Source of the DNA: Dicyema japonicum
Lineage: Eukaryota; Animalia; Dicyemida
Assembly: GCA_011109175.1 (NCBI GenBank)
Contig: RDEW01000008.1
Coordinates: forward strand, 1,295,600-1,358,662
Length of the DNA stretch: 63,063 bases
Direction of reading: 5' to 3'
Every line of letters begins with the position of its first letter. The stretch's first letter is position 1. The notes beneath the pieces were generated by a model that was given only the letters and a program-made list of their open reading frames with translations, ran no database searches and was not told where the DNA came from. Of the stretch, positions 19,386-62,397 are shown in pieces. A program made the position numbers and the translations under genes.

Positions 19386-19440
19386 GAATTTAGATTATAC
19401 GACAAATAAATTAATATTCGCACTTTCCGAAGAGCCATAT

Positions 19441-28223: not shown

Positions 28224-28543
28224 AGCCGGGTGGCTTAGTGGTTAGGTGTCGGGCTTAAGTGGCTTAGGCTACGGGTTCGAATCTCGCTGCTGTTCACCTG
28301 GTGGAAGGTTCCACGCACCTACGATGCAGAAATGGTTTGACGAGTGACGCCGTCATCAGTGAATACTCACTGCGGAACTGGATTGTCTAGAAAGGACCCA
28401 CACACAAGAAAAAGAAAAAAAGAAGTGAAGATCATTCCTTGGTTCTACGATTAGTTAAAATTAACTGTTCTTTACTTAAATAAAGTGTGTGTCCTGCCTA
28501 TGCGGAGCTATAAAATACTATGGCTCTCGTGAAAAGGCTTTAT
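28224..28543 (+). mobile_element. tRNA-derived SINE, full-length with 11-bp TSD
   Basis: A-box TGGCTTAGTGG, B-box GGTTCGAATC, family core and a (TAT)n tail. TATTATTAATT flanks it at 28213-28223 and 28544-28554. Confidence 0.9.
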
Positions 28544-28778
28544 TATTATTAATTGGACGGAATTTTGTAGTAGCTACGTATCTTTGCTGTGCGAAATCCT
28601 GACCATTCCCTCTGGCTGGACATAAACTATTTCCGAGATACGAGAAGAAACCTTCTCTGTTGTGGAGATTAATCCAGGATTCCAAAACTAACCGCAGAAA
28701 AAAAACTGATATAGACTTCTGGATAACTTTATTAGACGATAACTCTTGTCCTTTGAAATTCGAATTTATGAAAAAAAG

Positions 28779-28952
28779 TGTCAGATGAACGTAAGATCTT
28801 GGTTCGAAGGGGGGAGACATGCCAACTTAGACCGTTTTATGGGAGACACCCCAAACGTTCTAAATTGTCAGATGAACGTAAGATCTTGGTTCGAACGGGG
28901 GAGACATGCCAACTTAGACCGTTTTATGGGAGACACGCCAAACGTTCTAAAT
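28779..28952. repeat. Near-perfect tandem repeat, 2 x 87 bp
   Basis: Units start TGTCAGATGAACGTAAGATCTTGGTTCGAA at 28779 and 28866 and differ at only a few positions. Confidence 0.9.
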
Positions 28953-28961
28953 TAAAATTAG

Positions 28962-29450
28962 TCTTGAATAAATTTTGTTCATCATGAAATGTTCTAGAAT
29001 TACAAAAGGACGCCGGTTATGTGTATAGAAGGTGTTTCATTCCAAGTTAAAAGTAATNCTGGATTGTCTAGAAAGGACACTCACACAATAAATTTTGTTC
29101 ATCATGAAATGTTCTAGAATTACAAAAAGACGTCGGTTATGTGTATAGAAGGTGTTTCATTCAAAGTTAAAAGCAATCTTGAATAAATTTTATGCATCAT
29201 CAAATAATTAGAATTACAAAAGGACTCCGGTTATGTTATAGAAGGTGTTTCCTACCAATTTGAAGTAGTCTGTAGTAACTTTTGTTGATTATAAATGATC
29301 AAGAAACGTAATTAGAGTACAAGTATGTGAATAGAAAGTGTATCCTTCCAATTTGGAAGTAGTCTGGAATAACTTTTTGCTTTATGAAATGATCTAGAGT
29401 GACTAAAGGACACTGGTTTTGTGTATAGATGTTGTTATTTCATGAATACA
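28962..29450. repeat. Degenerating tandem array of ~95-bp units (about 5 copies)
   Basis: Recurrent AATAAATTTTGTTCATCATGAAATGTTCTAGAATTACAAAAGGAC..CGGTTATGTGTATAGAAGGTGTTTC, increasingly diverged rightwards. Interrupted by an N at 29058 plus 30 bp of SINE. Confidence 0.75.
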
Positions 29451-29735
29451 ACTAATCCAGTCACAATGATTCAGATTGTGCTCAGCCTAAACTCTAAAAT
29501 ATGAAAAACCTCGATAGATTTATTCTCTTCCTAACAAAAAAATCTCAATTAGAAATTGCTTGGAATGAATCTTGAATTCTTTATTTTTTCTATTGTTTCT
29601 TAGTCGAGATTCACTAAAAGCACTCAGACATGTTATATTTTTAATTTATAGTTTATCATTATATATAATTTTATAAATATTTGTCGATTTCTAATGAGCT
29701 TATTATTAAAAAATTATTTTTTTGCAATCTGTTAT

Positions 29736-30062
29736 AGCCGGGTGGAATAGTGGTTAGGTGTCGGGCTAAAGTGACTTTAGGTTACGGGTTTGATTCTCGC
29801 TGCTGTTCACCAGGTATAAGGTTCCACGCATCTACGATACCAAAAGGGTTTGACGAGTGATGCCGTCATCAGTGGATACTCACTGCTGAACAGGATTATT
29901 TAGAAAGGACCTACACAAGAAAAATAAAAAAAGAAGGGAAGATCATTCCTTGGTTCTACGATTAGTTAAAATTAACTGTTCTTTACTTAAATAAAGTGTC
30001 TGTCCTGCCTATGCGGAGCTATAAATATTATAACTCTAGTGAAAAGGCTGTTATTATTATTA
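29736..30062 (+). mobile_element. tRNA-derived SINE, full-length
   Basis: Colinear with 28224-28543 from AGCCGGGTGG to the TTATTATTATTA tail. Confidence 0.9.
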
Positions 30063-30134
30063 GCGGCAATTTGGGTGGGTCAGTCCTCATGTGGTTTTTG
30101 TGAGAGATTTTCGCGTAGTATTTTATTAGGGCGT

Positions 30135-31140
30135 TTAGGTCCTTTTGGCTGAATTCGTCATTTCCGGGTGTCCTCTCATCCACCTTCGAGATATTTCGAT
30201 TGTCTTCCAGACTTCAAATGTTGACTGATCACGATTTGATGACGTAAGGACCATCTTCCATTTAGCTCTCTGTATTTTGAGATCATTGGCTTTTATTTCC
30301 TCGTTTAGCACTTTTAGACAGGTTTTTGCTTTGGAGCAACGGATCCCTTTTTTTTGAGACGAATCCTTGACCAGATTCCTTTCGTACTCTTTGTAAACGA
30401 CTTTTTTCCACTGGTAATTTCGCTTTTGATTTTTAGCAGAATAGGTCATGATCACTTCGGGTGTCGTAGATGACGGACCAATTATCGTTGTTGAAAGCTT
30501 TGGTGAACAGAGTGTGATATTTGGGAAGGTTGGGTTGTCAGAGTTCCTTTGAGGTGTTCTCGTGTTTTTTGATGGATCATTGATGATCGTCAGATTGCCA
30601 GACTGCGTCAACAGAAAATTTCTTGTATCTGCAGACTAATTTAACAGCCAGAGAGGCTGTTTGGCATTCAAATCGCTGTATATCACGACTTTGTTCCAAA
30701 TCTCCAGTGCTGATAAGTCAGGCATGGTGTAATGGTTTGGACATGACCCTGAGGCGGAATATACATGTTTACAAAATATAGTCTTCCTTTGTTGTGCTAA
30801 CAGATATTCCGATTGCTTCCGTTTCATCACTCCCCAAAAAATTCTTCGCTTCGAGTGTATGGTCCTCATACTTTATGCCTTTTCTGATTAATATAGTAGT
30901 CCTCCACTTTCATAGTGCGATCGATAGCATGTATTATGCTGTATCGGGAAAAAGGGGCGTAGTATATTTTGCTGATAGCTACGATTCTTGGATGAGCACG
31001 ATGTCAGCATTAAGTTTAACAATCAGAGTATTAAGTTCAATAATTTTGTTTTTTATTCCGTTCACATTCAGTTGTATAACGGAGATTCGGTCCTTTGACT
31101 TGTGTAGGTTGCGAATCCGAGAGCTGTAGCCAGACCAATA
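30135..31140 (-). mobile_element. Decayed LINE APE endonuclease region (paralog of 15240-16260)
   Basis: ISVIQLNVNGIKNKIIELNTLIVKLNADIVLIQES; VVIYSDLNAKQPLW. Confidence 0.75.
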
Positions 31141-31388
31141 AATAATCCATCGACCGGGGGCGACACATGTACCCCCGATGGAAAAGCTAATGGCTCTTTT
31201 TGGAAATGCTTTAGGATCATTTTGAGCGCCTCCAGAGTTGTTGCATCCGGTGAGCCACATGACGCCACGCTAAAAATTAGTCAAAATGGAAAAATTGCAC
31301 AAAAATGACCTACATTAGTTAATTTATTTTTGACGTTAATCTCATTATTTTTTTTAAATATTCCATTTTCGATCGTTCAGTCACAGTC

Positions 31389-31805
31389 ATGAGATATTAA
31401 ATCGTATATTCTGGCTTGTAATTCTATTTGTATTAGTTCTACTTGTATTGAAGATCTCAGAAATATATAAAACTAAAAAAAGGTCCACAGTTGTCTTTTT
31501 AAAGACTAATAAATGTGGGAGCAGTTCAATCGTCAACATTCTCGACCGATATGCTCGTAGTCATAATTGAATAAGCTCTGCAGCTCGTGAATGAAGGAAC
31601 TAATTTGGCAAAAAAACACTATTTTTTAATGCAAAATATGTCCTGTGGAAATGAAACCATTTAATATGTTATTCTTTCACACAAAATTTAACAAAACAAG
31701 TATTCAGGAAATTGTAAAGCCAAATGCATTTTTCTTTACAATTTGAGAAATCCTTATCGTAAATATATTTCATATTATAATTATTACGTAAATCAAAAAA
31801 ACGTG
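31389..31805 (+). pseudogene. GAL3ST: Third, 3'-truncated GAL3ST-like pseudogene copy
   Basis: VFLKTNKCGSSSIVNILDRYARSHN. Frameshifted just after the ATG and ends in the tandem repeat at 31792. Confidence 0.82.
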
Positions 31806-31969
31806 ATAATATCAGAGTTCTTGACCACTTAAGTGATGCGCACGACCAGTAATATCAAAAAATACGTGATATATCAGAGTTCTAAACCACTTAAGTGATG
31901 CGCACGAATGTATCAAAAATACGTGATATATCAGAGTTCTTAAACCACTTAAGTGATGCGCACGAATGT
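31792..31969. repeat. Tandem repeat, 3 x ~58-62 bp
   Basis: ATCAAAAA(A)TACGTGATATATCAGAGTTCT(T)AAACCACTTAAGTGATGCGCACGA, three times. Confidence 0.9.
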
Positions 31970-31999
31970 AGGTCGTGTGATAAACATGTAAGATGGCGA

Positions 32000-33800
32000 C
32001 CTACTTCTCCATATCTATCCAGAAGCATGTAATGGACGAATAGAAGTGGAGGATGGATTTGGCGACAAGCAGTTCTCCCATAGGTTCCTTTCTCGGATTA
32101 ATAAGTTATGACCGCTTGTGCTGGGCTTATCAAAGATTGTAAGGTGGGTTGAATAAATATGTGGCTCACTTCTCTTACTGTCACTTGTCTGATCAAAAGT
32201 TTTCTTTCGTTGCTCCTTTAACAAATAGTTGATCCATATAGACAACTCTATCCAGGTCAATTTTTATTTGACAATCGTAGAAGCGAAAGCTCACTTGCGG
32301 GAGGTCTTACATGTGACATTTTTCTACTTCAATCCTGATATGTTTCTCACTTCTATATATAAATCAAATGTTATAAAGTCTAAATTTAATTTTTTAGGTC
32401 AATTAAGTCCAAAATCTTATTGATTTTTATTTTTTAATTTTTCGGTTATAATACATTTCTATCTTGTTGAGGTCTACCGAGATCACTTAATTAGATGGTT
32501 TAACCCCTTCTTTTTGGTGTATCTTTTTCTTTAACTTTAACAACTTTATTAGCAAGGAAAACTTAAAGAACGAGTTATTTTGGCCTCATCCCCGCAAGTC
32601 CTGCAAACGCTTGGACTCTTCTCTGCGCTCTTAGACCCCACTTATCGTTTATTCTGTTCTGCAACATACGAGTCAATGATGGCATCTCTTTTCAGGTAGT
32701 TTTCCATCCTTTCTTTCTGCTGCATCTCTTAAAGACATTACTAGCAAATTTTTTCCTCATCTAGCTTACAGTTTTGTGAGCCGTCTTTGTGTAGGGCAAT
32801 CTTGATCCCTGCTCTCCTCGATTTTTCAAGAAGCAGTATAATACCATCCTTGCTGTGCTTTGCCTGGAGCGCATGTCGATGTATCAATCAGCTGTACGTT
32901 CAAATCGCATAATTATTACGACGGATTCTATGGGGATACTCTGAACCAGGCAGTTGATAACGTTTTGAGTGGATTCTCAGTCACGATAATCCGTCTATCT
33001 GTGAATACTATATTAATATGAGCCTGACATATCCGGGCATCGTATGGGTCACCAAAAAACGTTTGAAACCACCGTGAAGCTTGATCATGCGATAGGGACC
33101 TTGTTGAACTATATGGAGAGGGAATCAACCTCAATATGATCCTCACTGCTGATCACGGAATGTAAAACACACTAACGGATCCCGGCTTTGTGTTTACGTT
33201 GGACAGAATTGTAGACCCAAAAGACTTCACTTCTACGAATGCTACCAGTTCTCTTTGCTTTGATATACCCAAAGAAAGACTTCTAATCACTAAAATTAGG
33301 AAGAGACCAGGTCGTCTATGACAAATTAAAGGGATCAATCCAAATCTGGAGCTTTACTGGCATGTGGATGTCCCCAAGATTACCACTATTCTAAAAGCAA
33401 CCTATCTCCCCAATTGTGGATGTGTTCCTTTATCATATAATTTAGAACTTGCTGCTTTTTGCTGAAGGTAGAAATGCTTTTAATCTGTTTAGTCGGCCAG
33501 CATGGCTATAATCGACGCGTATCTCAAATGCACCCCATCTCCATTGCAATGGGAAATGTGTTTAAAGAGGATTTTGTTGGTGAGTCGTTTGAATCTATCA
33601 ATATCTTCCCGTTGATATGTAGTATTCTTGGATTTGAATCACCAGGTTAATGGATCATTTTCAAAAATAAACAGATTTTGAAGGGTCATAAAGGTTGGGT
33701 TCATATTTTACTTTTAGAACCTCGCAAGTTCATAAGGGTGCTCAGACTTATCATAATTATCCATAATGGACGTGGTTAATTCAGGATCTCAGATTCCTCT
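32000..33800 (-). mobile_element. Highly decayed non-LTR retrotransposon (tentative)
   Basis: Only scattered motif remnants: IDDLV (RT catalytic-like) near 33315 and CRTCGDE (zinc-knuckle-like) near 32600. Confidence 0.3.
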
Positions 33801-34019
33801 ATCTCTTAGCTGATTTCTCTTTATTCACTCTACTTTGTCTATAATTTTGATAGTCTAGTGTAGTGTTTCTCAACCTTTTGCTTGTATCGGCCCATAAAAA
33901 TTTTCTCCTCTGTAAATAATTTATTGCCCCATAATAACTATAAAGTAATTAATTAAAGATTCACCAGTAAAATAATATTTATAACGCCCGTTTAACTCAA
34001 TCTTCTCATCTTGGACTAA

Positions 34020-34300
34020 CCTCTATTGCCTGTATAGGTGTGTTCACTCGCTGCACAACCCACACTCAGAGACTACCCTAGGTTGACAGTCCATGCCGTC
34101 TTACTTCTCACCTGGCATCGATGCTTCATACCTCTCTTCAATAAGACTAGCGTTTGAATTTAAGCTTTGACAATCTCCTCCACCTTGAGGGCATCCAGGT
34201 AGCCCTTGAAGAATCTGGAAACAATTCCATCCCAGGTTACGACCACAGGATTATTTCGACCTTTGTGAGATGGATAATCTCAAGTTCGTTGGCTACTAGG
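34020..34300 (-). mobile_element. R4/Dong-like element 3' end with UTR
   Basis: YDLVANELEIIHLTKVEII..VVVTWDGIVSRFFKGYLDALKVEEIVKA*IQTLVL. The UTR aligns with 50570-50690. Confidence 0.7.
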
Positions 34301-34499
34301 TCATATATGTGAAAGAAACCGGTGGCCGACGAAAACGTCCAAGTATACTATCCTAGAGACATCGACCACTTAGTAGTTTTGAAAAGTGGATGCTTTATCT
34401 CGGAAGACTTCACTTCTAAAATTTGAGAGTATATTTCGAAAAAACTTTCAGTTTCCAAAATAAAGTTAAAAAAACATATTAAATTATGAAATTGTATAA

Positions 34500-35641
34500 A
34501 CCATGTACAGCATTCGGTGGTGAGACCGATCTTACCACAATAGTTCTGCTATGAAGGGGAGACATCTCTAACACGACGAATTGCATGTAGACATTATTCT
34601 TACCCCCAATTTTACTGATAACAATATCTCTGATTTCAGAATCGCCTCGTCATCAAATTTCTGGGAGAAACAGTAACAGTAAAGATTAGGCATCAAACCC
34701 AGAGCTTAGTCAAGGCCGGTTTGAAAACATCCCCAATGAAGTCAACAGCATCCATGTTGTACGTCAAATGTTCTTTGAGCTCCGGATCGAGTCATAAGTT
34801 CTCATTAAGCCAGTGAGAACACTTAAGATTCAGATCATTTGCAAACACGTGGTCAGACCCCGGATGGAAGAAGGGATAGAAAAGGACCCGATTCCAGCGC
34901 AAACATAAATACAACAGTTCAGGACCGGTTAACTTAATCACGTGTTCATATTCCGTTCAGCCTCGAATTCAAGTAAACTTTGGAAAAATCCATTTTGAAA
35001 GTGACTCCATTCTTCCGAACACACATAACCATTTCATTCTCCCCAGCAATTACCTCCAGGTCCATAGTCCTGAATGTATTGGAGATGTTTTCATTACCAC
35101 TGTGCGACTTTTCGAGAAGAACTTGGCCAACAAATTAGTTGGTCCCGAACCAATGACGTATTGGTAGGGAACAAAGTCATCGTCAATGTTCACGTGAAGA
35201 ATGCCCTGTGATTGTGTGAGGTGCAATGGAGACGCCATAAAAACTACGTAACAAGCCTTCCATGGCGACGTGGTGTAGTCTATTTTCAGCAGCATTTTTA
35301 CTAAGTTTTCCTCAAATTTGAGATGAGACTCTTTATTGTCATTATTTATAAACTTTCTGACAGGGATCGAAATCTCCATAGCACGTGACCAGATGTGGAT
35401 CCAGAATCAGTATCCAGAATAAATCGCATATTTGTTCAAAGGAGGACGGCTTTAGCTTAACAAGAGAGTTTCTCAATTCCTTGGAGAGCTGGCTAACTGA
35501 CTGGTTTAGTAATCAATCCTAGCACGTGGACCTCTCTATCAAAAAATAGAACGGCCAAGTATTGTCGGTGGTGATGTCTTACAATATCAAACATCCTTTC
35601 CGTCGACCTAAAGTTGGTAGAGAACACAGAAACGAGTCCAT
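34500..35641 (-). pseudogene. TRMT5: tRNA (guanine-37-N1)-methyltransferase TRM5 pseudogene
   Basis: GILHVNIDDDFVPYQYVIG, NTFRTMDLEVIAGENEMV..NGVTFKMDFSKVYLNSRL, AGIGSFSIP, VFANDLNLKCSHWL, PNLYCYCFS and VRDVSP, in TRM5 order. Many stops and frameshifts. Confidence 0.85.
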
Positions 35642-36788
35642 AACTGAGATTATTCTACTTATTAACAGTCTGTGCATTCTTACAAATTAGCACGTGTTCT
35701 CTTTCAAAATAATATTAAGTGTTAGTTTTTGAATTAAACTTTTTTTATTAACATTACGTTAATGACCTAGAGTAACCAAACTAACTAACTCCTTGATCCT
35801 GACTCGTCTCCAGGTAATAATTGGATCCTCTTAAAGCCGGCCAGACATTGGAAGTCTCCTCAGAAAGGTGGATCCATTGACGCCATCGAAAGGAAATAAT
35901 TATGACCAATAGCACACATGGGGATATTTTTCAGATATTTAATGCGAGCTAGGTTGAGGAAGTGTATTTGGTTAAAAAGATGTGATCCCCGCGATAAACT
36001 GTGGTTGAGGGCTCGAAATGGCGGTGATCAAAGGAAGGCCTTCGCAATCCTGGCCTTTAACTAAAAGACTTTAGTTGTTTCGAGTATTCTCCAGCTCATA
36101 TCTCTCTTACTAAATTATTAAGATTGTCAATATAATTCTAGGGTCATTTTTACTAAAGAGCTGCTATAATATATTTATTTTTGTTTACACATCAATCCGG
36201 TTTTTTATTATGACAGTCTTTATGACACTCAGAAGTTTGAATTTGATAGAAAAAAGAACTATAGCAATCACAGTTCTCATAATAAAAATCTAGAAAACAA
36301 TTATATTTTAGTTTGATGCTGTCGTACTGATCATTACCGTTGTAATTCTGGTATACGTGATACATACCTTACTGTTCGTCTGCTGAGAATGTTGAATCTG
36401 TCTTTTAGATTCTCTAGCTATTCAACACGGTTTTGACTGTATCCGTGGCCGTTTTTTACTTTCGCAAGGTTAACTCAATTAGTAAATTATAGCAATCACT
36501 GCTAAAAAATAATTTCTATTATATTCGTTGAAAGGTTTGTCATCATCTGGGTTCTGTACAGAACCAAATACACTTGACGGATCTATGGGAGCATCAATTC
36601 ATTGCTATGACGTTCTTGTTAGCCACAGGTCTCTTTCAGTCCAAAGATAACAAATCATGGTAAATAAATAAACCAAGACATAACAAATCATGGTAGCTGA
36701 TGTGAGACAGTGGACATTGCCCAGTCGATGAACTTATTCAAGAGCTGTAAATACCAAAAAATAATTTGAACAACAAAAAACTATTTTT

Positions 36789-37470
36789 TTAAATTAATAA
36801 TATTTTGACGGAGCTCTCCAATCTATCTTCCTTTATTTCTTTGTACTCTGCAATTTCCTCTGTAATAAAAACTCACATCAAAACCAATTAAATTCAGATT
36901 CACCGTCTGATTAATCTCCAGCATTTTAGAGAGGCTATTTATGCACCCAAAAATAACCTCAAAGTTAAGATTCGACACCTTATCATATATCTTGTGTTTA
37001 GTCATTGACATCAGCAAAATCAATTCACGAGTTTGCTGATTTATAGACTCTTCACATGCTTCTAACCTTTGTATTACCTCCTGATGTTCTTCTTGTATGT
37101 CAGGACGCTTAGACTATGAGTAAAATTAGTCACCAGGTAGTAAAGTAGACGTATTTCAAGTCACTTCCAGTATCCTCCGCTACCTCAAGACAATAAGAGT
37201 CGATTTCATCAAATCTACCAAATCAAACAGAATGTTAACAAATCTGCATATTTTACTGAATTTAGCGTCTGCTTGCTCGAAATCTGAGTTGGAGAATTAT
37301 TCGTTATCTAAAATAGACAAAGCTAACAAACCATGCATGTTTTCGTTTTATCCCCATACTCAAAATGTGAATTCAGACCGTAGGGTTCCGAAAATGTGAC
37401 TATTTTCTGATATATACATTTATTTTATTAACCCCGAACAAATCACGAGAAAGATAATAAAGGTATCGTC
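36789..37470 (-). CDS. Unidentified spliced gene with a coiled-coil-like C-terminus (gene or young pseudogene)
   Basis: Candidate GT-AG introns of 26, 24, 25, ~37 and 25 nt join open frames including SKRPDIQEEHQEVIQRLEACEESINQQTRELILLMSMTKHK and EEIAEYKEIKEDRLESSVK. The 5' end abuts a LINE fragment and no start codon was found. Confidence 0.4.
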
Positions 37471-37473
37471 TAG

Positions 37474-38100
37474 TTAAGTGATATCAGTCCTTTTCCTGCG
37501 GTTAGTTTTGGAGTCCTGGATTAATCTCCACAGCCGGGAATGTTTCTTTTCATATCTCGGGCAGGCGTCCATATATAGTCTGATGTGCGGTACGAGTGGA
37601 TGGTCAGGGGACTTTGCTATCTTAAGAAAGTCCCGGTGACGTTCCGTAAAGTATTCCATGAATGGAGGACGTTTAGTGTTCTCCGCAGTAACGAGGTGGA
37701 CGTCTTTTTCGACGATCTCAATAGAATTCTGAGACATCGATTTTGTAAAACCTCCAGCTTGTCTGTGCCGATATTGATAAAAGGGCAATCCATGCAGCAC
37801 AGGTGTACTCAATACTAGGTAGAACAAATTGTTTGTATATAAGCTCTAACGATTGGCGGGAAATACTGGAGATGAGTGAAAGCCTTGAGCATTCCAATTT
37901 TCTTTTGTATCCTCGCGGTACTAGGTCCACTTGATAGGTAAATGTGAGTAGGGGATCCAGGAAGACTCTACGGATTGAAAGAGTCTTCTTAATGGAAAGC
38001 GGGGAGTCATACAATGTTATTCGTGGTGTTGCCCGTAATTCTTTTCGTGCTGAGGTAAACGTCATTACATGTGACTTTGATATATACATTCAAACTCCAC
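37474..38100 (-). mobile_element. LINE ORF2 C-terminal fragment
   Basis: ISKSHVMTF...FLDPLLTFTYQVD...LELIYKQFVLPSIEYTCAAW. Related fragments at ~38330-38760, 42050-42240, 47712-47987, 57370-57700 and 59637-59830. Confidence 0.65.
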
Positions 38101-41860: not shown

Positions 41861-42884
41861 ATCATAAATTATCACAAAGAAGTGAAATTATTTCTTTAAT
41901 TTAAAAAAATTTTAAATAAATTTATATTATAACTTTTTAAAATAAATTTTTATGAACTATTTTTTAACTCACACGTGAAGAAAGTCCTTACTAAAGGCCT
42001 GCAGAAGTTGAATGTTGTACGAGGATTCCTTTGAAATTAGATGTTTCTGTTGCTACATTCTACTGGCAAAATTTTTCCCTGGCTATGGAGTATGCCTCTG
42101 TTGCATAGAGATTCGCGTTATCAGAGACTACGTTCCACAGAATCAATTCAATATACCGGAAAACTATATTTATGATTGACTCTCATTCTGGATCAATGGT
42201 TAATCCCCTACTAACGGAAGCTTCTTTCTCGGTGATTTCGGGGTTCTAAATAAATAAACTATTTTTAAAAAGTTGGCAGTTAAGAAAACTGGCGGTTAGT
42301 ATGAGTTCGGCATATGATTAGAAATCTTCGTAGAAAAGAGGAATTTGGAGGTAAACCAAGACGATGTTGGGATCAGCAAGATTCTTAGTGTCTTAAAGAA
42401 ATGATTCAATGTCTGAATTCCTTTCTTCTTTATTTCAATGGACGGGATTCACAATGGTGGACATTGATACTTATGAATATGCGTCCCATTTTACAGGTAT
42501 GTTATTAAAATATTGGTGGATAACATTTAATAGTTGTTAATTTTTGAATATTATGTGGTTGTCCTACATTATACGAAAACTTCATGTTTGATCAAATACA
42601 AAGGTCCCTGGAAAGTTTGTTTAACTTTTTTTGGAAATAATAATTTTTCTGAATGGTTGTTGCCCCTAACGATAAGTTCCATTAATATTGAGGTAACGTT
42701 CGAGAATTTATAACTATTGATCCTCTTGTCACATCTCAAGGGAGACAGTCACAGTTCCTCCGTTTAAACCTGATGATATTTAATCCATGAGCGTGTAGTA
42801 ATACTCCATTTTACGAAAAGCCATACTAACTATAGCTCCTCCCAGGCAGACTACACATATAACTAATCGTAGAGGGAGATCCAA

Positions 42885-43065
42885 GGAATGCTCTTCACTT
42901 CTATTTTCTTTTTGTTGTGTGTGAGTTGTTTTGTAGACGATCTGTTCCGCAGTGAGATGTTCACTGGTGACGACGTCACTCGTCAAGCCGAAACATCGTA
43001 GATGTTTGGAACCAAAAAATGTACAGCAGCGGGATTCGAACTATGGGCCATGGGCCACCCGGTCA
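42885..43065 (-). mobile_element. tRNA-derived SINE copy (short head)
   Basis: Reverse complement: CCGGGTGGCC...AGTTCGAATCCCGCTGCTG...GGTTCCAAACATCTACGATGTTTCGGCTTGACGAGTGACGTCGTCACCAGTGAACATCTCACTGCGGAAC. Confidence 0.85.
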
Positions 43066-43322: not shown

Positions 43323-43392
43323 GCTTTGGTAGCTCAGTTTGTTAGAGCGTCGTGCTAATAATGCGAAGTTGTGGTCGAACTCCCTCGGAGCA
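43323..43392 (+). pseudogene. tRNA-Ile(AAT) pseudogene
   Basis: GCTTTGG..TCGGAGC acceptor with three G-U pairs, D-arm AGCTCAGTTTGTTAGAGC, anticodon loop CT-AAT-AA. The T-arm is shortened and unpaired (GTGGTCGAACTCCC); 70 nt in total. Confidence 0.75.
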
Positions 43393-48450: not shown

Positions 48451-48644
48451 NNNNNNNNNNNNNNNNNNNNNNNNNNNNNNNNNNNNNNNNNNNNNNNNNN
48501 NNNNNNNNNNNNNNNNNNNNNNNNNNNNNNNNNNNNNNNNNNNNNNNNNNNNNNNNNNNNNNNNNNNNNNNNNNNNNNNNNNNNNNNNNNNNNNNNNNNN
48601 NNNNNNNNNNNNNNNNNNNNNNNNNNNNNNNNNNNNNNNNNNNN
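48451..48644. other. Assembly gap (194 N)
   Basis: Run of N. Confidence 1.
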
Positions 48645-51194: not shown

Positions 51195-51404
51195 TCAAAC
51201 CAGATCCGCAAAATCGCGCAAATTTTTCAAACCGCGTTGATCAGGCATGTTCGAGGACAACCATGTGGGATGGTGGGAATTAAAATCTCCACAGAATAAC
51301 ATATTCAATAGACATAAGGAAAAGTAAATTTGCCATGTAGTTTCTAGTACAAGAAATGGGAGGAATGTACATATTGACGACAGTAAAACAAGTCTTCTTG
51401 ACAT
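51195..51404 (-). mobile_element. LINE APE endonuclease remnant
   Basis: LFCGDFNSHHPTW motif. Confidence 0.6.
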
Positions 51405-52084
51405 TTACCTATTTTCTTTTTTGGTTACGTGCAAATCTGTAGATATCCCATACCATATTAGGTATTACTGATGATGGTGCCCTTCGTAAACCAGGAAGCA
51501 TAGTAGACAACCTCATGGAGTAAATCTTTATAAAGGTTTAACGTATAATCAAGAAATCATAACTCATATATGTTGATAGTCTCCATCTTCGAATGATTCA
51601 GCCAATCAAAGCTCGTTCAAAGATGGAACGAATATAAGTAAATCGTTTGCACGACTTTATAATCGTTCAGATATTATAGATGAAGGAGGCTAATGTTACG
51701 GCTACGCAGTCAATTGTGCCTATAATATTTGTCCTTTTCAAGCACACGCAAGTACACCGAACTAATTTTGTGAGAACAACCTCATAAAATTATCTTTCTT
51801 GATGCCATTCACGCATTCGCCGCCTCCTGAGACAAATGGATCATATGACTTCACTCTTTTTGAACGACAGAAAAAAGGGACAGAGCATAGGAATAGAACC
51901 TCAGACGTAATTAAAAGCACTCCGCGGTTCCGTAAGTATATGAAGGGTGTTTTACTAAATTTCCACGTGGGCAGGACACATACTTATTTTTAAGAGGGAA
52001 AGAACAGCTATTCTAATTAATCGTAAGAATGGAGTTAAGGCATCAAGGTTGTTCTTAACATCTCTTTTTTGTCGGAGCGAGTAT

Positions 52085-52235
52085 CTGTAGACTAAGTGAG
52101 GTATCATTGAAATCGTCGTCACTCGTTAAGCCAGGAGGCATCGTAGATGTGCGGAACCTTCACCTGGAGTGGACAAGAGCGAGATTCGAACCAGGAAGCA
52201 AGTTAATTAACCATTAGTTAAGTAACCCTGGTCTT
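52085..52235 (-). mobile_element. tRNA-derived SINE, partial copy
   Basis: Reverse complement: GGTTCGAATCTCGCTC...GGTGAAGGTTCCGCACATCTACGATGCC...TTAACGAGTGACGACG. Confidence 0.75.
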
Positions 52236-53469
52236 ACTAATTTTTTAGAGACTAGCTGCTAAAACATTCCAGTCACTCCCATAGGTCAGTCTTCGTATTT
52301 TAGACAAACGGTGTACTAATTCAGAACATTTAAAAAGCTTAGTCCTGTCAACTCGGAGAAGTTGGAAAAGGAATGAATGACATCTTTTACCTCTTCCAGT
52401 CTACGTACGTACGTCGGTAGAGAGGGGATGGTGTCCATGTCGTAGACGAGCCGGGTTCATTCCAGAGACCACGGAAACGCCAAACTAACTACTCACGTGA
52501 TTCCAGCACCTCTCTACAGAGACCTAAACTTGACCAGATGTTCCTCTCTCGAGCCCACAAAACCAGTATCGGCAGTATAACTGGATGCTCTTATTCTCAC
52601 AAGCACGCTTCTCGGTTCTTACAGATGGGAATTCCAGAGGAGTGAACAGGGGACCTTTTTTTTCCTCAAAGATTTTTTCCTATTTTTCCTTAATAGTAGA
52701 ATCGGTAATCTTATAAATTCCACTTTTCCTATATTGCAGCACAACATCTCTATTATTCAAATTGCTGATTTGTCATCAAATCAGCGAGCGTCTTCTTTTC
52801 GAGCTTGCATATAAAATTTCGCCACTATGGACTCGAATTTGCTTTTCAGCCAATATTGGTCACTGAAGTGCACCGAATGAGTGACAGAATCCGTATTATG
52901 CAAATCTTTCAACAACTATTGTATCTCTAAAAGTTACATAACTATTATAAATATCTTTGCGCCACACTGTGTTCTGGGTACAACCTGGACTCAATGAGAT
53001 TACTGACTCACGATCAAGGCTATATATACTGAGCTTCACACGAATGTTCTTTCATCCTCCACAGTTACACGCAATCGATCTCAGCTCGTCCAGTTCGTCT
53101 CCCGTCTTTTGAACGAGTCTCCATCGCAATAGGAGTGAAATGGATTTTCCGATCTACTCTCTGATTTTCCGACCTCCACCTTGTCTTAATAGCATAAACT
53201 CTAATTCATTCATGTTATGTTAATCTATGAATTATCCGTTATTTGAATTGGTAACAAGAAAAATTTCAAGCACATTTTCATTGAAACATTTTATGTCAAA
53301 ATCAAAAATTATTATTCAATAATTCACTTTAACCGCTTTTTTAATAAAATATCACACTCTTTAGTAAAATCAAGTAAGTTTGAGAATACTAGGATTGAAA
53401 ATGAAGTTGTCGACATTTTATGCACTAAATGGTTGAAATTCAGATGTTATGATAATTGACAGGAAATCT

Positions 53470-54030
53470 GTCTTAATGGTAAAAATTCTCAGAAACTGTC
53501 TCCCAATCCTCGGCTAAGAAAGTAAAAAATGAAGCATTCAATGATACCGTTACAAATGAAATAACTGCGGATCTCCCATGTTTAGAAAATGATCCGATTT
53601 CCAATGAATTGGATTCATCCTTCTGATTTCACGGAGAACTTGAATTCAAGTGGACTCTTGGAGGACGTCAAGATCTCACCGTTGAGCGTAATAAGACCAC
53701 AAACTTTCTAATGTGATAATTCTCTTAAATTTGAATAACCTAAGACTTCCATAAAGCGTAACAGATCTTCATTCCTACAATCCAGTGAAGAAGAAAGGCA
53801 CTTCTGCTGTGCACCAATATGGATGATCTGTTGGAATCAAATACACTCTTTCATTTCAGGACTTGTTCATTCAATTTTGCTTGCAATAGGATTATATGAT
53901 CAAGCATATTCGGACTAAACACTTGAGTGAGAAATCGACTCCATCTTCAGAGTCTGGGGTGACATTTTCATGTAGATTTTGCGATGCGACCTTTAAATAT
54001 TCGACTGTTTGTGTAAACCCGTCAAAACTA
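53470..54030 (+). pseudogene. Possible decayed C2H2 zinc-finger gene
   Basis: DYMIKHIRTKH (HxxxxH half-finger) and FSCRFCDATFKY (F-x-C-xx-C-xxx-F), preceded by Ser/acidic frames. No consistent splice model was found. Confidence 0.3.
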
Positions 54031-54224
54031 GAAAATGATCTGATTTTTATTCTGGTTTTGTCTTGTCTTTCACGTTTATTACTCATAGACCTCTCATGTT
54101 AGAAAACCTCTATGTTGGGGTGGAGAAATTAGATCATAATCAGATGAGTGCTGAGGGAGAATTAAGCAAAACCACGTAAATCTATGTGAAAAAAGCGCAT
54201 TCAGAACAAATATTTTAGTGAAAA

Positions 54225-55358
54225 TCACACTTCCACAAAGTAATAGGGGTGCTGATCACGGTACTTTGCATCAATGGAAGAGTTTATTAGAGGTTTCAGT
54301 TGCCTACCAGGACCGACTTCGTAAACATTTCGCTTGGATGGTGAATTAAACAAATATTCCATGGTTTGTTGCCATTTTACTGGCGACACAACCTGGCGGA
54401 CTAACAAATCCTTGATCTCCTCGACGTTTTTGTACGGTTTGGCTGATAGATTAGAAATTACGTTAATTTTGGGCTCATTAAATTTAACATTGCTAAATTT
54501 AGTCAAAAACAAACTTTAAGACATCTTTGAGTTCATCGCAGGCAAAATTCATCATCTGAGTATGAAAGGCCCCACTAACCTGAAGCCTCTTAACTTTCCG
54601 AATTCCAAATTTGGAACTATTCGCTTCGATAAACTCCAAAGCCTACAATTAAGGCAATAGTCACCTCGACAGAGCCACCAATTACTTGAAATGCGGAAGA
54701 AAGATAATTTGCAGGCTGGCAAACTGAATTAGCGATTCCCAAAGAATGACAGTGCTCAATAGCCGCCTTACAGCAGTCTTCGATGTTCGAGATTCCGTTG
54801 ACCATTATAGAAATCATCCCTCCATTAGTCATCTCCGAAGCCTTCTGCATGGATGTAGCACGAACCTTTACTACTTTTACTGCTGTTTGGGTTACAAATA
54901 AGACAAACCATCCTCAAAAGACAGGCACTCTGAGAAAACGAGAGAACTATATTCTCCCAAACTCAATCCTGCAGTATAATTGCAAGTTCTAAGAGCTTCT
55001 GGATCTTCATTCTCAAGTTTTCCGAGAGAGGCTAGAGATGTGACCATAATAGCTGGTTGGGAGATTTCTGTTCTCATTAATTTATCAGATGGCCCTTCCA
55101 AACATAACTAAAATGACATCTAAAATATACTTTCAGTAGATCATATCCTAAAATAACACTCGCTCTCTCAAAAAGATCAACAGATTCCGGAAAATGCTTC
55201 AACTTTGATGCCATACCGATAAATTGGGAGCCCTGTCCAGGAAAAAGAAGCACAGACGATTCCTTCGATATCTGAGTTTGCGAAAACACGGCTGCTTCAC
55301 TTGAGCAGTTCCTCAAAACAGCTCTGACAGAAGCAAAAGGGAGCTTTAACGTGAACAT
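54225..55358 (-). CDS. MCAT: Mitochondrial malonyl-CoA:ACP transacylase (FabD family), intact, 346 aa, 5 exons
   Basis: Exons 55358-55131, 55107-54909, 54882-54665, 54642-54515 and 54492-54225; GT-AG introns of 23, 26, 22 and 22 nt; 1041 coding nt open to TGA. Motifs LFPGQGSQ, SQPAI, GLSLGE (catalytic Ser), VKVRA (Arg), VSGAFHT, QVVSPVKW and EVGPG. The basic, Ser-rich N-terminus looks like a targeting peptide. Confidence 0.95.
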
Positions 55359-55769
55359 AAGCACCGGTAACGGAGGAAGCGTCAAAATTCTATAAATAAT
55401 CGACATGGCGTGATCACGCCACTCTATTATGGTCCGATTTTTACTTATAATAATAATTAATAGACACCTGTGAACGCTCCAAGGGCATGTCGTGAGTTTT
55501 AAAAAATTTTGATTTTTACCCACGTGAGATGTCTCCCATTGTCCCCCATCTCCAGGATCTTGTATTAGTGCCTTTAAATGATTAAAGTGGAATTTTTTAA
55601 ATTAGCATCGAGGTCACGTCACTTGATATGATGATATTGATCGATCTTTTCAGCAACTCATATTCTTCATATCTGGTTTACTCACTTTTTCTTTAATGTT
55701 TTTATTCGTTCAAAACATTTTTAATTATTATTTTTATTTTAATTTTTTTAATAAAATAATTTTTTAACA

Positions 55770-56480
55770 AAAAAACAAATGTCAGTTGATGAAGCCGACT
55801 GCGTGGATTGCGAACGAGTTCCCTCAAAGTATGGCCATTCCAATCTTTTGTCTCAGCCATAATCCTTCTTGTTGATTCCTTTTCTTTCTGGCAAGCGTTC
55901 CTCCGAGTTCTCGCAAGAACTCAGCCGTTCATTGGACCAACGGCTCCCGATTATTCGGTCGCAACAGGAGTAAATCGGTAGCGGTCCCCGAGGCAAGAAT
56001 ATTTCTTGATTTTTAGGTTCTCCGCAGTCGAAGCAGCTGCTCCAGGTGTCTGAACCGATTTGAAAATATTCGTGCTTGAGAACGTGTCTACACTGCGTCC
56101 CAGACCAATGATCTTCCAGACGTGAAGGGGAAAAGCGTCATCCCGTCAGGTCTTTTTCCATCTCCTCGATCGAGACCCACTGATTCAAGCTGTGCTGGGT
56201 AGCCTGTAGCCTTCAAAACTCTGACGATCACATCGTTCAGAGCAGCATGATGTGGTCCTCTTCCGGCGCTTTTATCTGCAGGACAGCGAGTGCAATCCCT
56301 TCGCATTGACTGTTTTCCCGTATCGGCATCAATGCTCCTGGCAAACGTCTAGTCCCAGCCATTGTCCGATTCCAATCCTCAAAGAATCGTCGTCCAAAAA
56401 GGTCCCGAGGTTTGGGCAAGGTATTGCACCAAGCCATGCTCCACTCCCTCCTTTTGAAGCTGACACCAAACATGCCATAC
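55770..56480 (-). mobile_element. CRE-like element, RLE domain to 3' end
   Basis: [52 protein letters not shown], with a WLRQKIGMAILRG-type terminus. Confidence 0.8.
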
Positions 56481-59400
56481 AATGTTGATTTGTTTCTTTT
56501 TTAAGGTCTTACAAAATTTTGGAGCAGACAATGTTATCTCTTCCGACAAGCTTCGTCAAATGACTCATTCCAGCGAAGTCCAATAGTGTTATGAAGGACT
56601 TGCCGTGTCAAATGGCTAATTTTTATTTAAAAAAATTATTAACGAAAGGCTAAATCACTGAAAATTAATTATATCCTTTTTTCTCAACCACACTAGGCTA
56701 AATCAGTACCCCCATTTTTAAGAAAATGAGGTCAGCACTTCAGCAAAAATCATACTATTACTATTTGAGCAAAGTCTATGGTTACTATAGTAACCCATCA
56801 AGAGACAGGGAGCATTACAGCAAACGATTGTGATCGCAAGGCGTTTACGGAACCATGAATCGTTGTTCCTTAACAACCTGTCCACATTCTTCAATTTTTA
56901 TTAGGAAAGTTGACCAAATGGGAAGCACAATGTCTCAGACTATAACTTTATATGTCGTTAAGACATGAATACTTAGGGTTCCGCTTGTGTCGTGCTCTTC
57001 ACTATCCGTTTTACCAGTTTTCTCCGTGTTACTTTCGCTCTCGCATGTCTCCGTAGTTCATTGAGAAATCCATGCATAAAGTCCCCGTTTAGTGTTCGAG
57101 GCTTGTCCTCTGATCGTACGCGTAAAAAAATTTCGAAGGGACCACATACGGCTGTCGAAAGTCAAGAAATTCAAGAAATACAGAAAAGTAAACTTTCTGA
57201 CTTTAGTTGATGAGGAATTGATTATTGGATTCTCATTAGCATTACACTCAATAGTTAAGGCCGCGAAAAATATCAGTGCAGCTATTCAAAAGACAGGCAA
57301 GATTTTTATTCCTCTCTCCATGGACAGTAGAAAAATTGTGGTGTCACGTGCTAATTGATTTAAGATTTCTGTTTGTTTCGATTGCTTCACCTCTCCCATT
57401 TTCTACTAGAGTGACATCATGTGATTCACCTGCCCAGTGCAAGTTGGCACAAAAAGGATCATTTTCTCTCCCTTAATTCACTGGTGGGGTTTCCACGACT
57501 GCAAGGAATGGACTTTTTTACATTTTATACTGGTTCTGGATGTTTGAGTTTGACAACCATCAGGAAATTTAAAAAAGCATGTGCGATTATAGTTTCAATA
57601 AGAAAATTCCCGTCCTCAATTCTGGAAAACATTAAAACAGATCGAATAGGAGCTGGAAAATACATATGGACAGGCTGCTTCCCAGAGGATATATGTCTCA
57701 GATGAACCCTGATCTACCCATGAAACACTACGCGGCAGTTTCAAGACCTTCTCGAGTAACTTTTGCATAAAACCAAGGAGTTTGCACCAGGAATTATTCA
57801 GACAAACAAGTTTCCAACGGGTCTGCAGCCAGACAAGATTTCTTCAATTCACTTGAAACATTACACCTACCATACAATCTTCTTCGACCAGGGAAGAGTG
57901 GCGACTGGTTTAGCATTGTCGCTAATCAATTTATTTGGCATTTCTGCGCTAGCAGATTATTTCCAACCGCCAACAAACTTTCTAGTTTTCAACCATAAAA
58001 CTGAATTTTTTCCGAAACTTAAATCTCTCCCCCAAAGTCCTAAAAACGATATGATATTCAAATTTTATTAACGAATTTTCATAGTCGTGCAGAATGTAGT
58101 GGATCTAACTACAAATTTCAAATCAAGTCAGGGGATTTGAGGGGAGAGATCATCTGTTATGTTCTTCAACTGATGTTGCAGAGAACCAATCAACTTTTGG
58201 CAACATATCAATTTCCACGAACCTTTGATTTGCCATCTGTATAATTCGCCTCCCCAACCAGACATCAATTCTCTTTGGGATAAACATCACAACCCTTCAC
58301 GTCTGAATATATTAAAATATTCCGAGTTCACAAATTCTCGGATTACGAAAAAAACAAACTGGGAAGGCAAAACTGGATTGTAGTAGTTTCGAGGAAATTG
58401 TGGTAGCGTATCCTCCAAACGTTCTATGACTCTTAGCTAATGTTGGAATTAACATGAAGTTTCTCTAATTTCTTCAATAAAAAGTACAAAGCAAGTATTT
58501 ATTGAAGTAAAGAAAAATATTTCTGTTTCTCAACTAGATCAGTCACCTTTTGAAAATAAAATGTTCCATAATTTTTGATAAAGACCAAATAAGACTTTAT
58601 CGTTTTCAAGGTTTCACTACCATCCGGAGATCTTCCATCTATTAGTGAGGTGAAAAGAAACCAGTAGCTAACAGACACGTAGCAGCACACATACAGGGAT
58701 CCAAAAGGAATTCCATTGCGGAGAAGACACATAAAAAGGACAGGACACGAGAAAAGGTGATTAGTTCCGTGGCCATAAAGGTTACATCCAGGTCAGAGTG
58801 GCGACTCGACTGACACTTGAGGAAAATTCCCAATTAGCTTGGAGTCAATTAGTAGAATCAATAACAGGCGTCAGCGTCACATAAAAAGAAAAGAGACCTT
58901 TTTATTGTGAGAACATTCTTTTAACCTACTCAAAGTCAATTTTTTGGAATTCTCCACCGATTCCGATTGTTAAATCCTAGAAAACAGTTGATCCCATGTA
59001 GACATACACGTGGAGAGATATTGATATGCTATTGTAATTCAATCTCCCGATTTTCTCAAATAGATAGTAAAGAGATGGAGATGTTGTTCTTTTCATGTAT
59101 TTCAACAGAAATAGTTCCTTTTCCATCTGAGATGTTCTATAAATACCTCAAAGAGGGGAACCCAAGCCAAAAAAATCTTTTCAAGGTGAAAGACAGCCCG
59201 GGGTAATTTTATGGTTAGATTTGAGCACATATTACGGATGATTCATGCGTTCCTGCATACGATATTATGTAGTCATACTTCCTCTGCTCAGGGGCTTTTA
59301 GAAGGAGGTTACAGTAAACACTAAAGTAAAATGGTTAATTGGCTTGAGAGTCAATGCCTTATAAAGGAAAAGGACGTTAGGGTCCCAGAAAAAGAAAAGG

Positions 59401-60599
59401 GATTTTTTATTAATGGGAAATTATTCTTTTAGAAAAAATAAGGTGTTTAAGAATGATTTCGATTTTTCAGTATGTATTTTTTCAAAACTGTATGTTCCGT
59501 TGGATCCAAATTGTCAATATCTATTAATACTGTTTGATACAATGTAGTCACGTTCGATCTCCTTAGAATTTCCAATTTAGAGGCTGTTGAATTTCATCAG
59601 CCATTCGAAGTAAGTCTTCACCGAAGGCCTCCAGAGATGAACGTTGTGTGTCACTTGTTCAGAGGACCTCTCCACTGCAATACTCTATCAGCTCGTGCCT
59701 CTGTTGCGTGGAAATTCGCGTTATCGGAGACTATGCTCCGTAGACTCAACTCAATTTGCAGAACAACCATTCGTATGTTGAGCCCTCATACTGGATCATC
59801 AGTCACTCCCCTACTCACAGAAGCTACGAACCGTAGTCGTGCTCCGGCTTTCTTTTGCCTTCCAAAAGTTTCCACTTCGAATCTGATTTCTTTACAGGAA
59901 TGAGAGAAAAACTTCCGTTCGATACTGGGGACAATTAAAAACCATAGATGTTTGATAACACGGTTGATTGCGGGAACATGATCATTTGTTTTCCTTGGGG
60001 ACTTAACTTCTCTATTTTATTTTTCTTGATACAAAACTTAGTGGCTGTTAATGTTTTCAAGTGATAAAATGGTCTTATCAACCCAAACAGTATCGACGCA
60101 TAGCTACATTAAAAAGCCAAGATGCACGTGAGACTCAGTGGCTTCTCCAGTTGATCTCTTGCAATCTTTAGAGGCAACGCAAATACAAAATTAATTTTAA
60201 AATTAAATATCCGAGTTTTTTATTCGAAAATATTTTGCTAAGTTTTTTTCAATAAATTATATAGTAGAAACCATCTCCATTCACGTGGGTCTGTAGTCGT
60301 GTCATGATTGCAATTCCAATTTCATTGATGACACCTTTATCATTCTTCCAGCAAGAGCTTTCAAGGGTTATTAGAAAAACGTAAGCGATCTCCGAGGCTG
60401 ACTATTCTTCAATTCACGATTCGAGCAGTCAGAATTGCCAGAAAATACAAAATGTGAAGCGGTAATGAGTTGACGCACTCACGTCCCAAACGATACGTTT
60501 CCATATGAAAATGGGAAAATAATTCCATTGTATAACTCCCGAATCTATCATGTTGGTCCTCACTCAGTGATTTCGGTTGCTCTCTAGATCCTCACTATG

Positions 60600-61600
60600 A
60601 TTTTCTTCGGGGTTGGTGAAGCGACAAAGTATTCCACACCACCGAGGGGGCATTCTCTACTCAAATTAACAGTGAGTCGTTCCCAATCACCCTCATGTTT
60701 CTTTCTGACCCTTTCACAATCTCCTTCTCATGATCTGCTCCTCGGTTTACTTAGTATTGACCATAAAAGCTTTTGAGGCAGTTTACTTGATAAACTCGGC
60801 CATTTTTCTATTTTATGTTTTGTGACAGGTGACTTGATTTACAATTTCATTCCCATCTTGCACTATTCTAGAGCAGTATCAAGTAGCTTAAAGTCTTGGC
60901 TTTGAACCCCAACAGATTATTAACTACACAGCCAACTGATTTCTTAAAGTGAACATTCTTGTAATTCATGATTGGAGTCAGTGAGGACCGCTCTTTTTAG
61001 CGAGATAAAAATAGGGTTATTGTCCTTCCGAATTCGTATCCACGTACCACTAGTCAGTGGAGTGACGTCAGATGAGACGAGTGTGATGTCGAGCGATGTA
61101 AGGTCATAGGCTTTCTAAGGTGCTCTTGCGTACGTCAAATTTTCCAAGTTCTTCAATAATGAAATTTCCCCGTGTATGGGAGTTAATTCATGAATCCCCA
61201 GATATAATTCCAAGTCCTAAAGGCAGGAATCGAGAGGGGTAAGTTTATGTTTCTGATCATGACAAATCCAATGTTGTCGAGACACAGAGTCTGAATAACT
61301 CAGTGGGGGTTAGTAAATGGTCATATTCCCTTCCTGTCAAAAGTGATAAGTCTTCTTCCAAAGTCTGAGAATTGGACTTATCGGATGACGTCGTAATCAG
61401 GTAAGGCAGAGAGTGGATTAGTGAGTATCATCTTGTTTGTAAGTCCATAGATCGATAATTTCCTTTTACTTCGTTAATAGTAGAAGGCCAGAGATAATTA
61501 TCTGGTCTTCCTCAATGCCGATGATAACTGTCCAAGCACCTCATAGTGTAACTAGGACATTATTTGGACCCTGTTTCGATGACAGATAAAATGTAGTTAC
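60600..61600 (-). mobile_element. Highly decayed RT-like remnant (tentative)
   Basis: Only KAYDL and RHPISPILRL remnants are recognisable. Confidence 0.3.
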
Positions 61601-61639
61601 TTCAGCCTCACTAAAAAATAAAAGTCCGCTTCCTTTTCA

Positions 61640-62035
61640 ACGTTGGGGGCCCTATAAGCACCTTATAGAGCTCTGAGTGGTCTGAAGGTCATACAAAACT
61701 GTTCATCGAGGCTACAATAGGATGCGCATGTAATATCTGGGGATCTAACCTTTCTGCAACGAATTTGGACAAGATATGCATATTCAAGTGAAGGCAGCAA
61801 ACCTACTAAATAAATATTCCCGAGTGGAAATTCTGCCAAGAAACCTAAAAAATATGATAGAGGCTGGAACAATTCCTTTGCCAAGAACTCGAATATGCGG
61901 AAATTCGCAGGAACGCAGTCATAACACCGACAAACGATGCGAAGACTGTTGAGGGAGGCTGGGATCACCTGAATTTTGTTATTTTGGATATGACGATGGT
62001 TTTTTGGTTCAATAAAAAAAATAAATAGAGCGGGG
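61640..62035 (+). mobile_element. APE-type LINE 3' end (family of 6235-6575)
   Basis: KLFIEATIGCACNIWGSNLSATNLDKI, followed by the GGGATCACCTGA UTR motif and an A-rich end. Confidence 0.55.
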
Positions 62036-62149
62036 ATCCAAGGCAGATAAAATTCTTTCAAAGAGTGACAGCAGAGATTAAGTAACTCAAAGAGATTTGA
62101 CCATAAAATATAATTTATCCATCAAATTTAATTTATTTTTCTTAAATTG

Positions 62150-62397
62150 GACCTTTACATTTCGGTTAAAGGTTCCACGCATCTCTATGCTTTGGCTTGA
62201 CGAGTGACGCCGTCATCAGTGAACATTTCAGTGCGGAACCGGATTGTCTATATAGGAAATAGACCTAACAAAAAGAAAACAAAGAAGTGAAGAGCATTCC
62301 TGATTCTCCTCATCGATTAGCTATGATAACTGTTCTATGCTTAAAATAAAGTGTGTTCTGCCTGAGGGGAGCGATAGCTGATATTATTATTATTACC
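62150..62397 (+). mobile_element. tRNA-derived SINE copy, head truncated, (TAT)n tail
   Basis: TTCGGTTAAAGGTTCCACGCATC...TTGACGAGTGACGCCGTCATCAGTGAAC...GAGCGATAGCTGATATTATTATTATTA. Confidence 0.85.

Follow-up and report, generated by a model that had tools for sequence, protein, structure and literature searches.

A 63,063-nt stretch of the Dicyema japonicum genome (assembly GCA_011109175.1, contig RDEW01000008.1, positions 1,295,600 to 1,358,662; hereafter the window, numbered from its first letter) was found to contain a family of short interspersed elements (SINEs) with a tRNA-derived head, seven of whose eight copies carry, directly behind this RNA polymerase III (pol III) head, a central block of 73 nt that in its consensus form folds in silico as a closed four-way junction. 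The block is a real central module of the SINE and plausibly a structured one, while its function and its novelty are unproven. We tentatively favour the explanation, to which we give somewhat less than even credence, that a young and prolific dicyemid tRNA-SINE has the block as its central module, forming a compact junction in the transcripts of the master genes and kept for retrotransposition competence. For the present it is a tRNA-SINE of ordinary appearance for which a neat structure is predicted.

Composition of the SINE family

The list of copies is based on an nhmmer search of the window with the 28224 copy as query, by which a tRNA-headed family of eight copies was recovered on both strands. 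All eight had been located at these places in an earlier note made from the sequence alone, and the copies are called here by the positions used in that note. The reference copy is composed as follows.

28224-28560, plus strand: 28224 copy, full-length reference with head, block, A-rich stretch, tail and (ATT)n
28228-28298, plus strand: tRNA-derived pol III head, tRNA-Leu(aag)-like (ARAGORN, 80% threshold)
28231-28241, plus strand: A-box-like TGGCTTAGTGG, read off the sequence
28274-28284, plus strand: B-box GGTTCGAATCT, read off the sequence
28307-28379, plus strand: central block, proposed four-way junction, 73 nt
28431-28548, plus strand: 3' tail of about 120 nt, followed by (ATT)n

The remaining copies and one fragment are distributed over the window.

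29736-30063, plus strand: 29736 copy, second full-length copy, 90% identical to the 28224 copy; block at 29820-29892
19419-19689, minus strand: 19441 copy, 5'-truncated; block at 19571-19643
42797-43057, minus strand: 42885 copy, second subgroup; block at 42943-43013
62163-62377, plus strand: 62150 copy, 5'-truncated; block at 62171-62240
51956-52198, minus strand: 52085 copy, old and diverged; block at 52095-52158, without the 3' closing strand
26068-26188, plus strand: 26066 copy, ending just past the block (26106-26176)
9238-9314, plus strand: 9240 copy, partial, with the B-box half of the head and the hairpin 1 variant GCAT-CAAT-ATGT
29058-29091, plus strand: 34-nt SINE fragment (element positions 154-187), directly after a single N at 29058

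The pol III head, the dispersed copies with unrelated flanks, the 5' truncations and a likely target-site duplication in the 28224 copy are the features of a tRNA-derived SINE (SINE2); the duplication is represented by ATTATTAATT, which is present on either side of this copy, whereas the other copies show no clear duplication. The block was found in seven of the eight copies, in each case directly behind the head. In the 9240 copy divergence starts after TTGGCTTGA, and of the block this copy holds the first hairpin only. A covariance model run without filters detected the block in the same seven copies and at no other site of the window, and the 25-mer TTGACGAGTGACGCCGTCATCAGTG occurs six times in the window at up to 3 mismatches, compared with 0 expected occurrences. 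The fragment at 29058-29091 is probably an assembly join within the repeat. The assembly gap at 48451-48644 touches no copy, the nearest ones to either side lying at distances of 5.4 kb and 3.3 kb, so that the continuity of the gap has no bearing on the SINE finding.

Since the Rfam tRNA model did not match the head even at E values up to 10, the head is to be regarded as a decayed tRNA derivative. At the other end of the element, the (ATT)n terminus is visible in the 28224, 29736 and 62150 copies. The 3' tail is presumed to be related to a long interspersed element (LINE); neither a LINE 3' end with the SINE tail nor a LINE counterpart of the block in a 5' untranslated region was found in the window.

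Abundance and distribution

Public contigs were aligned to positions 28200-28580, and from the best-represented run of the same organism 22,573 contigs were placed on the 28224 copy. Near-identical whole elements were present in three other labelled organisms. One of these is represented by a 302-nt contig from an RNA library which differs at 1 position and covers 28241-28540, that is, almost exactly the SINE alone; the other two labelled organisms contributed one contig each, of 265 nt (5 differences) and of 250 nt (20 differences). The SINE family is extremely abundant and is common to close relatives.

Dicyema japonicum is a kidney parasite of Octopus sinensis, and its genome, sequenced in 2019, has 36.7% GC, 4.1% gaps, 48.9% repeats and very short introns (PMC6736024); the GC content of the window is 36.6%. 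The SINE and its block were absent from 44 kb of the O. sinensis genome, and none of the four loci reached through relatives of a LINE protein (two in O. sinensis and two in other assemblies) contains either of them. An octopus origin of the window was rejected on the ground of this absence; GC content, assembly gaps and micro-introns agree with D. japonicum. Exact-pattern scans of metagenome and viral contigs gave 0 matches and later four chance 20-mers which fitted the pattern only. The repeats of the dicyemid genome have been given as a percentage, with no description of SINEs (PMC6736024), and our literature search found no paper on dicyemid SINEs.

A predicted four-way junction in the consensus block

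The proposed junction is made up of the following parts, given for the 28224 copy.

28307-28312 with 28374-28379, plus strand: closing helix, 6 bp
28315-28319 with 28323-28327, plus strand: hairpin 1, 3-nt loop
28328-28337, plus strand: linker of 10 nt between hairpins 1 and 2
28338-28342 with 28351-28355, plus strand: hairpin 2, 8-nt loop
28357-28361 with 28368-28372, plus strand: hairpin 3, loop of 6-7 nt across copies

As consensus block we used the 28224 copy with the majority letters of the contig table described below at three positions (28318 T, 28333 G and 28362 G). Its minimum free energy fold is exactly the proposed junction, at -22.7 kcal/mol and with pair probabilities of 0.63-0.94, and in the fold of the whole 337-nt element the junction stays an independent domain (probabilities of 0.61-0.91). 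The majority sequence of the second subgroup (the 42885, 62150 and 26066 copies), which differs in its hairpin 3 loop and in having a shorter linker, takes the same fold (-22.9). The four-way junction drawn in the earlier note was thus borne out for both consensus sequences on their own and, for the family consensus, within the full element. A closed junction of at least four arms was obtained in 1.8% of 3000 dinucleotide shuffles, and in 0.2% when equal stability was required too. The closing helix and hairpin 3 lie one base apart and could stack to form 11-12 bp.

Some details of that drawing had to be corrected. The strand pairing with the 5' end had been described as 7 nt long and as following hairpin 3 directly; in fact C28373 intervenes and the closing helix has 6 bp. 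In the 62150 copy, GGTTCC (62171-62176) and GGAACC (62235-62240) lie exactly at the positions reported and close the block as given, but the three hairpins proposed between them are not all regular, hairpin 1 being the variant GCAT-CTCT-ATGC and hairpin 3 containing a G/G mismatch. The positions of GCATC-TAC-GATGC (19635-19623) and AAACATC-TAC-GATGTTT (43007-42991) proved exact, and the G-U pair reported for hairpin 3 of the 19441 and 29736 copies is present.

The region of hairpin 2 contains TGACG twice, 7 nt apart, followed by the inverse CGTCA (28338-28355, and at the same place in other copies). Because of the two TGACG copies the 3' strand could pair with either of them, giving the 8-nt loop or, alternatively, a stem of 4 bp with a 3-nt loop. 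The TGACG/CGTCA motif resembles the half-sites of bZIP proteins.

Variation of the block among copies and contigs

Pairwise identity among the window copies amounts to 0.80 in the block, 0.60-0.65 in the head and 0.57-0.70 in the tail. Genome-wide variation was taken from the contig table, which comprises contigs at least 80% like the 28224 copy and lists the sites with an alternative letter at 5% of depth or more; contig depth has maxima at hairpin 2 and at 28460-28485. By this measure common variants occupy 6 sites in 73 nt of the block, 6 in 74 nt of the head and 2 in 118 nt of the tail. The claim that the block is the best-conserved part of the family therefore holds among the window copies and fails among the genome-wide contigs, in which the tail has fewer common variants. 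The block counts as a conserved module, but it is not alone in this within the element.

The common variants of the block are confined to the linker (28328, 28329, 28333 and 28336) and to the hairpin 3 loop (28362 and 28364), so that none of the 42 stem positions but 6 of the 31 unpaired positions are affected (Fisher p = 0.004). This placement of variants is the best evidence that variation in the master genes is restricted to positions that need not pair. It leaves one uninterrupted segment without any variant at or above 5% genome-wide:

28337-28361, plus strand: 25-nt invariant segment with hairpin 2 (loop included) and the 5' strand of hairpin 3

A selected or an incidental fold

The main rival of the explanation favoured here holds that the fold is incidental: all subfamilies would have inherited the module from a recent master, and a young family would carry palindromes without any selected structure. 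We consider this unlikely, although it is the alternative that has to be taken most seriously. The observations collected in the following three paragraphs weigh against the favoured explanation, and a number of them are just what an incidental fold would predict.

To begin with the energies, the folding energy of the block does not stand out (z = -0.83 for the consensus, with single copies ranging from -0.1 to -1.2), with 12-20% of the shuffles equally stable, which places it at shuffle level and is in favour of an incidental fold. The topology test, in turn, was devised after the fold was known. Moreover, the junction fold was obtained for just two of the seven genomic copies, the 42885 copy being one that folds as a junction. 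Such a proportion is to be expected of decaying insertions, but it implies that the copies themselves lend the fold no support.

Pairing across copies was assessed in an alignment of the seven window copies with 140 pair cells, 87.9% of which hold standard pairs and 17 of which are broken. Pairs are broken in most copies, again as an incidental fold would have it: the 29736 copy has lost the inner closing pair and one pair of hairpin 1, the 19441 copy the inner closing pair, with hairpin 1 intact, and the 26066 copy pairs in hairpins 2 and 3. As the 29736 and 19441 copies share the broken inner closing pair, a subfamily may have spread without it. The hairpin 1 variants of the 62150 and 9240 copies retain a stem of 4 bp. 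Two double changes that keep pairing were found, both of the type G:C to A:U and both confined to single decayed copies. The first is located in hairpin 1 of the 42885 copy, which reaches 7 bp through this exchange plus a C to A change; the second is located in hairpin 2 of the 52085 copy, where two other pairs of the same hairpin are broken. Shuffled controls matched the counts in 104/500 and 58/500 cases, so that covariation does not exceed the controls, and the statement of the earlier note that pairing survives substitutions is reduced to an anecdote. The RNAalifold check proposed there revealed no significant covariation among the seven sequences: its covariation term was +0.94, which is unfavourable, and it gave the three hairpins but did not predict the closing helix.

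The variation data can be read in the same direction. The tail is less polymorphic genome-wide than the block and is indeed the least polymorphic part of the element, as might be expected if the whole family were young. The six variants at unpaired positions form two clusters, and if these are counted as two events the probability of such a placement by chance rises to about 0.18. Finally, the bases of the 8-nt loop in hairpin 2 vary no more than the stem bases do, which structure alone does not explain; it points to a sequence-specific constraint or to youth rather than to pairing alone.

Nevertheless, an incidental fold is difficult to reconcile with the low share of shuffles that attain the closed four-way topology (1.8%), with the retention of the junction by two subgroup consensuses with differing linkers and loops, with the avoidance of all 42 stem positions by the common variants, and with the better preservation of the block than of head and tail across the diverged window copies.

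A model for the function of the block

According to the explanation that we favour, pol III would start in the tRNA-like head and read through the block, the A-rich stretch and the tail to (ATT)n, and the reverse transcriptase of a partner LINE would copy the SINE RNA into new sites. The block of a master copy would fold by itself, with the 6-bp closing helix and three hairpins of 5-6 bp, and this fold might be kept in the master genes as a module acting at the level of RNA. The block may prevent mispairing of head and tail, or it may stabilise or package the transcript, and in either case the element would stay competent for retrotransposition.

A more far-reaching version, to which we would assign little probability, regards the block as an undescribed selected RNA module of dicyemid SINEs: a cloverleaf-shaped junction with an invariant 8-nt loop which would bind a host or LINE protein or undergo tRNA-like processing, and without which the element would not retrotranspose. 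If a selected module of this kind proved true, no SINE central domain before it would have had a defined multi-helix fold together with a testable role. What such central domains do has been an open question ever since CORE was described in 1999, and one that folds compactly and belongs to a tiny genome (about 67 Mb, of which half is repeats) is directly testable: with thousands of copies, covariation can be analysed across subfamilies, and the shortness of the RNA makes chemical probing feasible. The present analysis would also be the first description of dicyemid SINEs.

Relation to described central domains

It is rather improbable, although compatible with the favoured explanation, that the block is a local version of a domain already described (Deu, Nin/Inv, Meta, MESC, Snail, V, alpha or beta). 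Like MESC and the CORE-type domains, it lies directly behind the tRNA head and is about 70-90 nt in length, it is common to subfamilies with differing heads and tails, and such domains are widespread in spiralians. The CORE and Ceph domains are likewise modules behind a tRNA head that are common to SINEs with differing heads and tails (Gilbert and Labuda, 1999; Akasaki, 2010; Kojima, 2018, PMC5786205). They are marked by the motifs CCTTGGG(AAAG) and CCTTGGGAAAG, and Ceph in addition by the RTE-like 23-mer CCTCCAGCTATGGGTTAAATAGT (PMC5786205). None of these, neither CCTTGGG nor CCTTGGGAAAG nor the 23-mer, is present in the block or in the element; the 23-mer gave 0 matches at up to 3 mismatches, and three near-matches of the 11-mer motif all lie outside the SINE copies.

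The other domains were compared by description only. The Vhc of V-SINEs is a single hairpin of about 39-40 bp known from cnidarians to fish (Matetovici et al., 2016, PMC4758252), whereas the block is a four-way junction of 73 nt which has so far been seen in a single genome and in three of its close relatives. MESC, Snail/Nin-DC, Deu and Meta domains occur in lophotrochozoan SINEs (PMC4758252, PMC4824008). Of these, MESC is likewise located directly behind the head and measures about 95 bp, but the MESC SINEs described end in repeats of the CA/CAAA type, in contrast to the (ATT)n of the family studied here.

The descent from a known domain is further opposed by the lack of any Rfam match to the element, by the failure to find 10-12-mers of the block in any of the paper texts on SINEs searched, and by the absence of the block from the octopus sequence (44 kb) and from the collections of metagenome and viral contigs. 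As far as Rfam, the CORE/Ceph motifs and the paper texts searched are concerned, the block is undescribed; it may yet prove to be one of the domains Deu, Nin, Meta, MESC, Snail or V.

tRNA mimicry, ribozymes and DNA-level sites

A second cloverleaf unit 3' of a pol III head, as observed here, is known from dimeric tRNA-tRNA SINEs and from the tRNA-like mascRNA. The block might accordingly be a tRNA mimic or a decayed second tRNA unit which would serve as a target of RNase P/Z or of a tRNA-binding protein and would be released as an RNA of about 70 nt; we consider this very unlikely. The likeness consists of the cloverleaf topology, the two bases between closing helix and hairpin 1, the 5-bp stems of hairpins 2 and 3, and the loop of 6-7 nt in hairpin 3, which lies one base from the closing strand. 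The geometry of the junction is, however, unlike that of a tRNA: a linker of 10 nt is found where a tRNA has one base, a single base takes the place of the variable loop, and with a hairpin 1 loop of 3 nt the elbow of D-loop and T-loop cannot form. The block lacks T-loop, A-box and B-box sequences, and the earlier note was right that its loops are not tRNA-like. Unlike dimeric tRNA SINEs and mascRNA, it is also without matches to tRNA models. On both strands of the element (28200-28580) no Rfam match was obtained at E values up to 10, although the tRNA model is a weak test here since the tRNA-derived head fails it as well. ARAGORN called the head at an 80% threshold but never the block at 80% or above, while default settings found nothing and the runs at a 60% threshold and in mitochondrial mode returned noise only. 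At the Rfam gathering score, the whole window gave no match apart from one tRNA. The contig from the RNA library, moreover, covers the entire SINE and not the block alone. What is left of the suggested tRNA likeness is topology.

A ribozyme within such an element would not be without parallel, since the SINE-like Sm-alpha element of Schistosoma is said to carry a hammerhead ribozyme, that is, a structured RNA domain in a spiralian SINE-like body. In contrast to Sm-alpha, the block is matched by no ribozyme family of Rfam; the self-cleaving families considered on the element were hammerhead, HDV-like (hepatitis delta virus), twister, twister-sister, hairpin, pistol and hatchet. Two candidates were followed up and rejected. 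A minus-strand hammerhead fails as the sole CUGAUGA overlaps the stem of hairpin 3 and CAAA stands where GAAA is needed; an HDV-like fold fails because the 5' strand of the block has its partner at the far 3' end instead of in the middle, and because Rfam gave no match. The best reading is that the block is neither a tRNA mimic nor a ribozyme.

Least credible of all is an action of the palindromes as DNA, with TGACG/CGTCA half-sites that would bind a protein and aid transcription of the element: the 25-nt stretch holding both TGACG copies and CGTCA, invariant including its loop, would suit sequence-specific recognition better than pairing alone, but the other two hairpins and the closing helix would be left unexplained, and the A and B boxes suffice for pol III type 2 promoters.

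Other features of the window

A truncated non-LTR (long terminal repeat) retrotransposon with an RVT_1 domain is located at 21450-23281 on the plus strand and resembles LINEs of the R4/Dong type. Its best named relatives are proteins of Octopus sinensis, with identities of 69% (for the open reading frame at 22232-23281) and 65%; microsporidian and insect elements come next. Judged by these similarities, the element is a candidate for a transfer between host and parasite, if the genome is that of a dicyemid from this host.

A tRNA-Ile(AAU)-like gene at 43323-43392 on the plus strand reaches 35.3 bits in Rfam (gathering score 29) without an ARAGORN call; about 270 bp separate it from the head end of the SINE copy at 42797-43057 on the minus strand. 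Adjacent open reading frames at 12745-14177 on the minus strand encode a FLYWCH zinc finger and a MULE transposase domain, the latter just under the Pfam cut-off, and this domain content points to a remnant of a Mutator-like DNA transposon. Finally, a malonyl-CoA:ACP transacylase-like (MCAT-like) gene with the motifs LLFPGQGSQ and GLSLGEYS extends over about 54200-55500 on the minus strand; its reading frame switches every few dozen codons, which fits a dicyemid origin as well as micro-introns.

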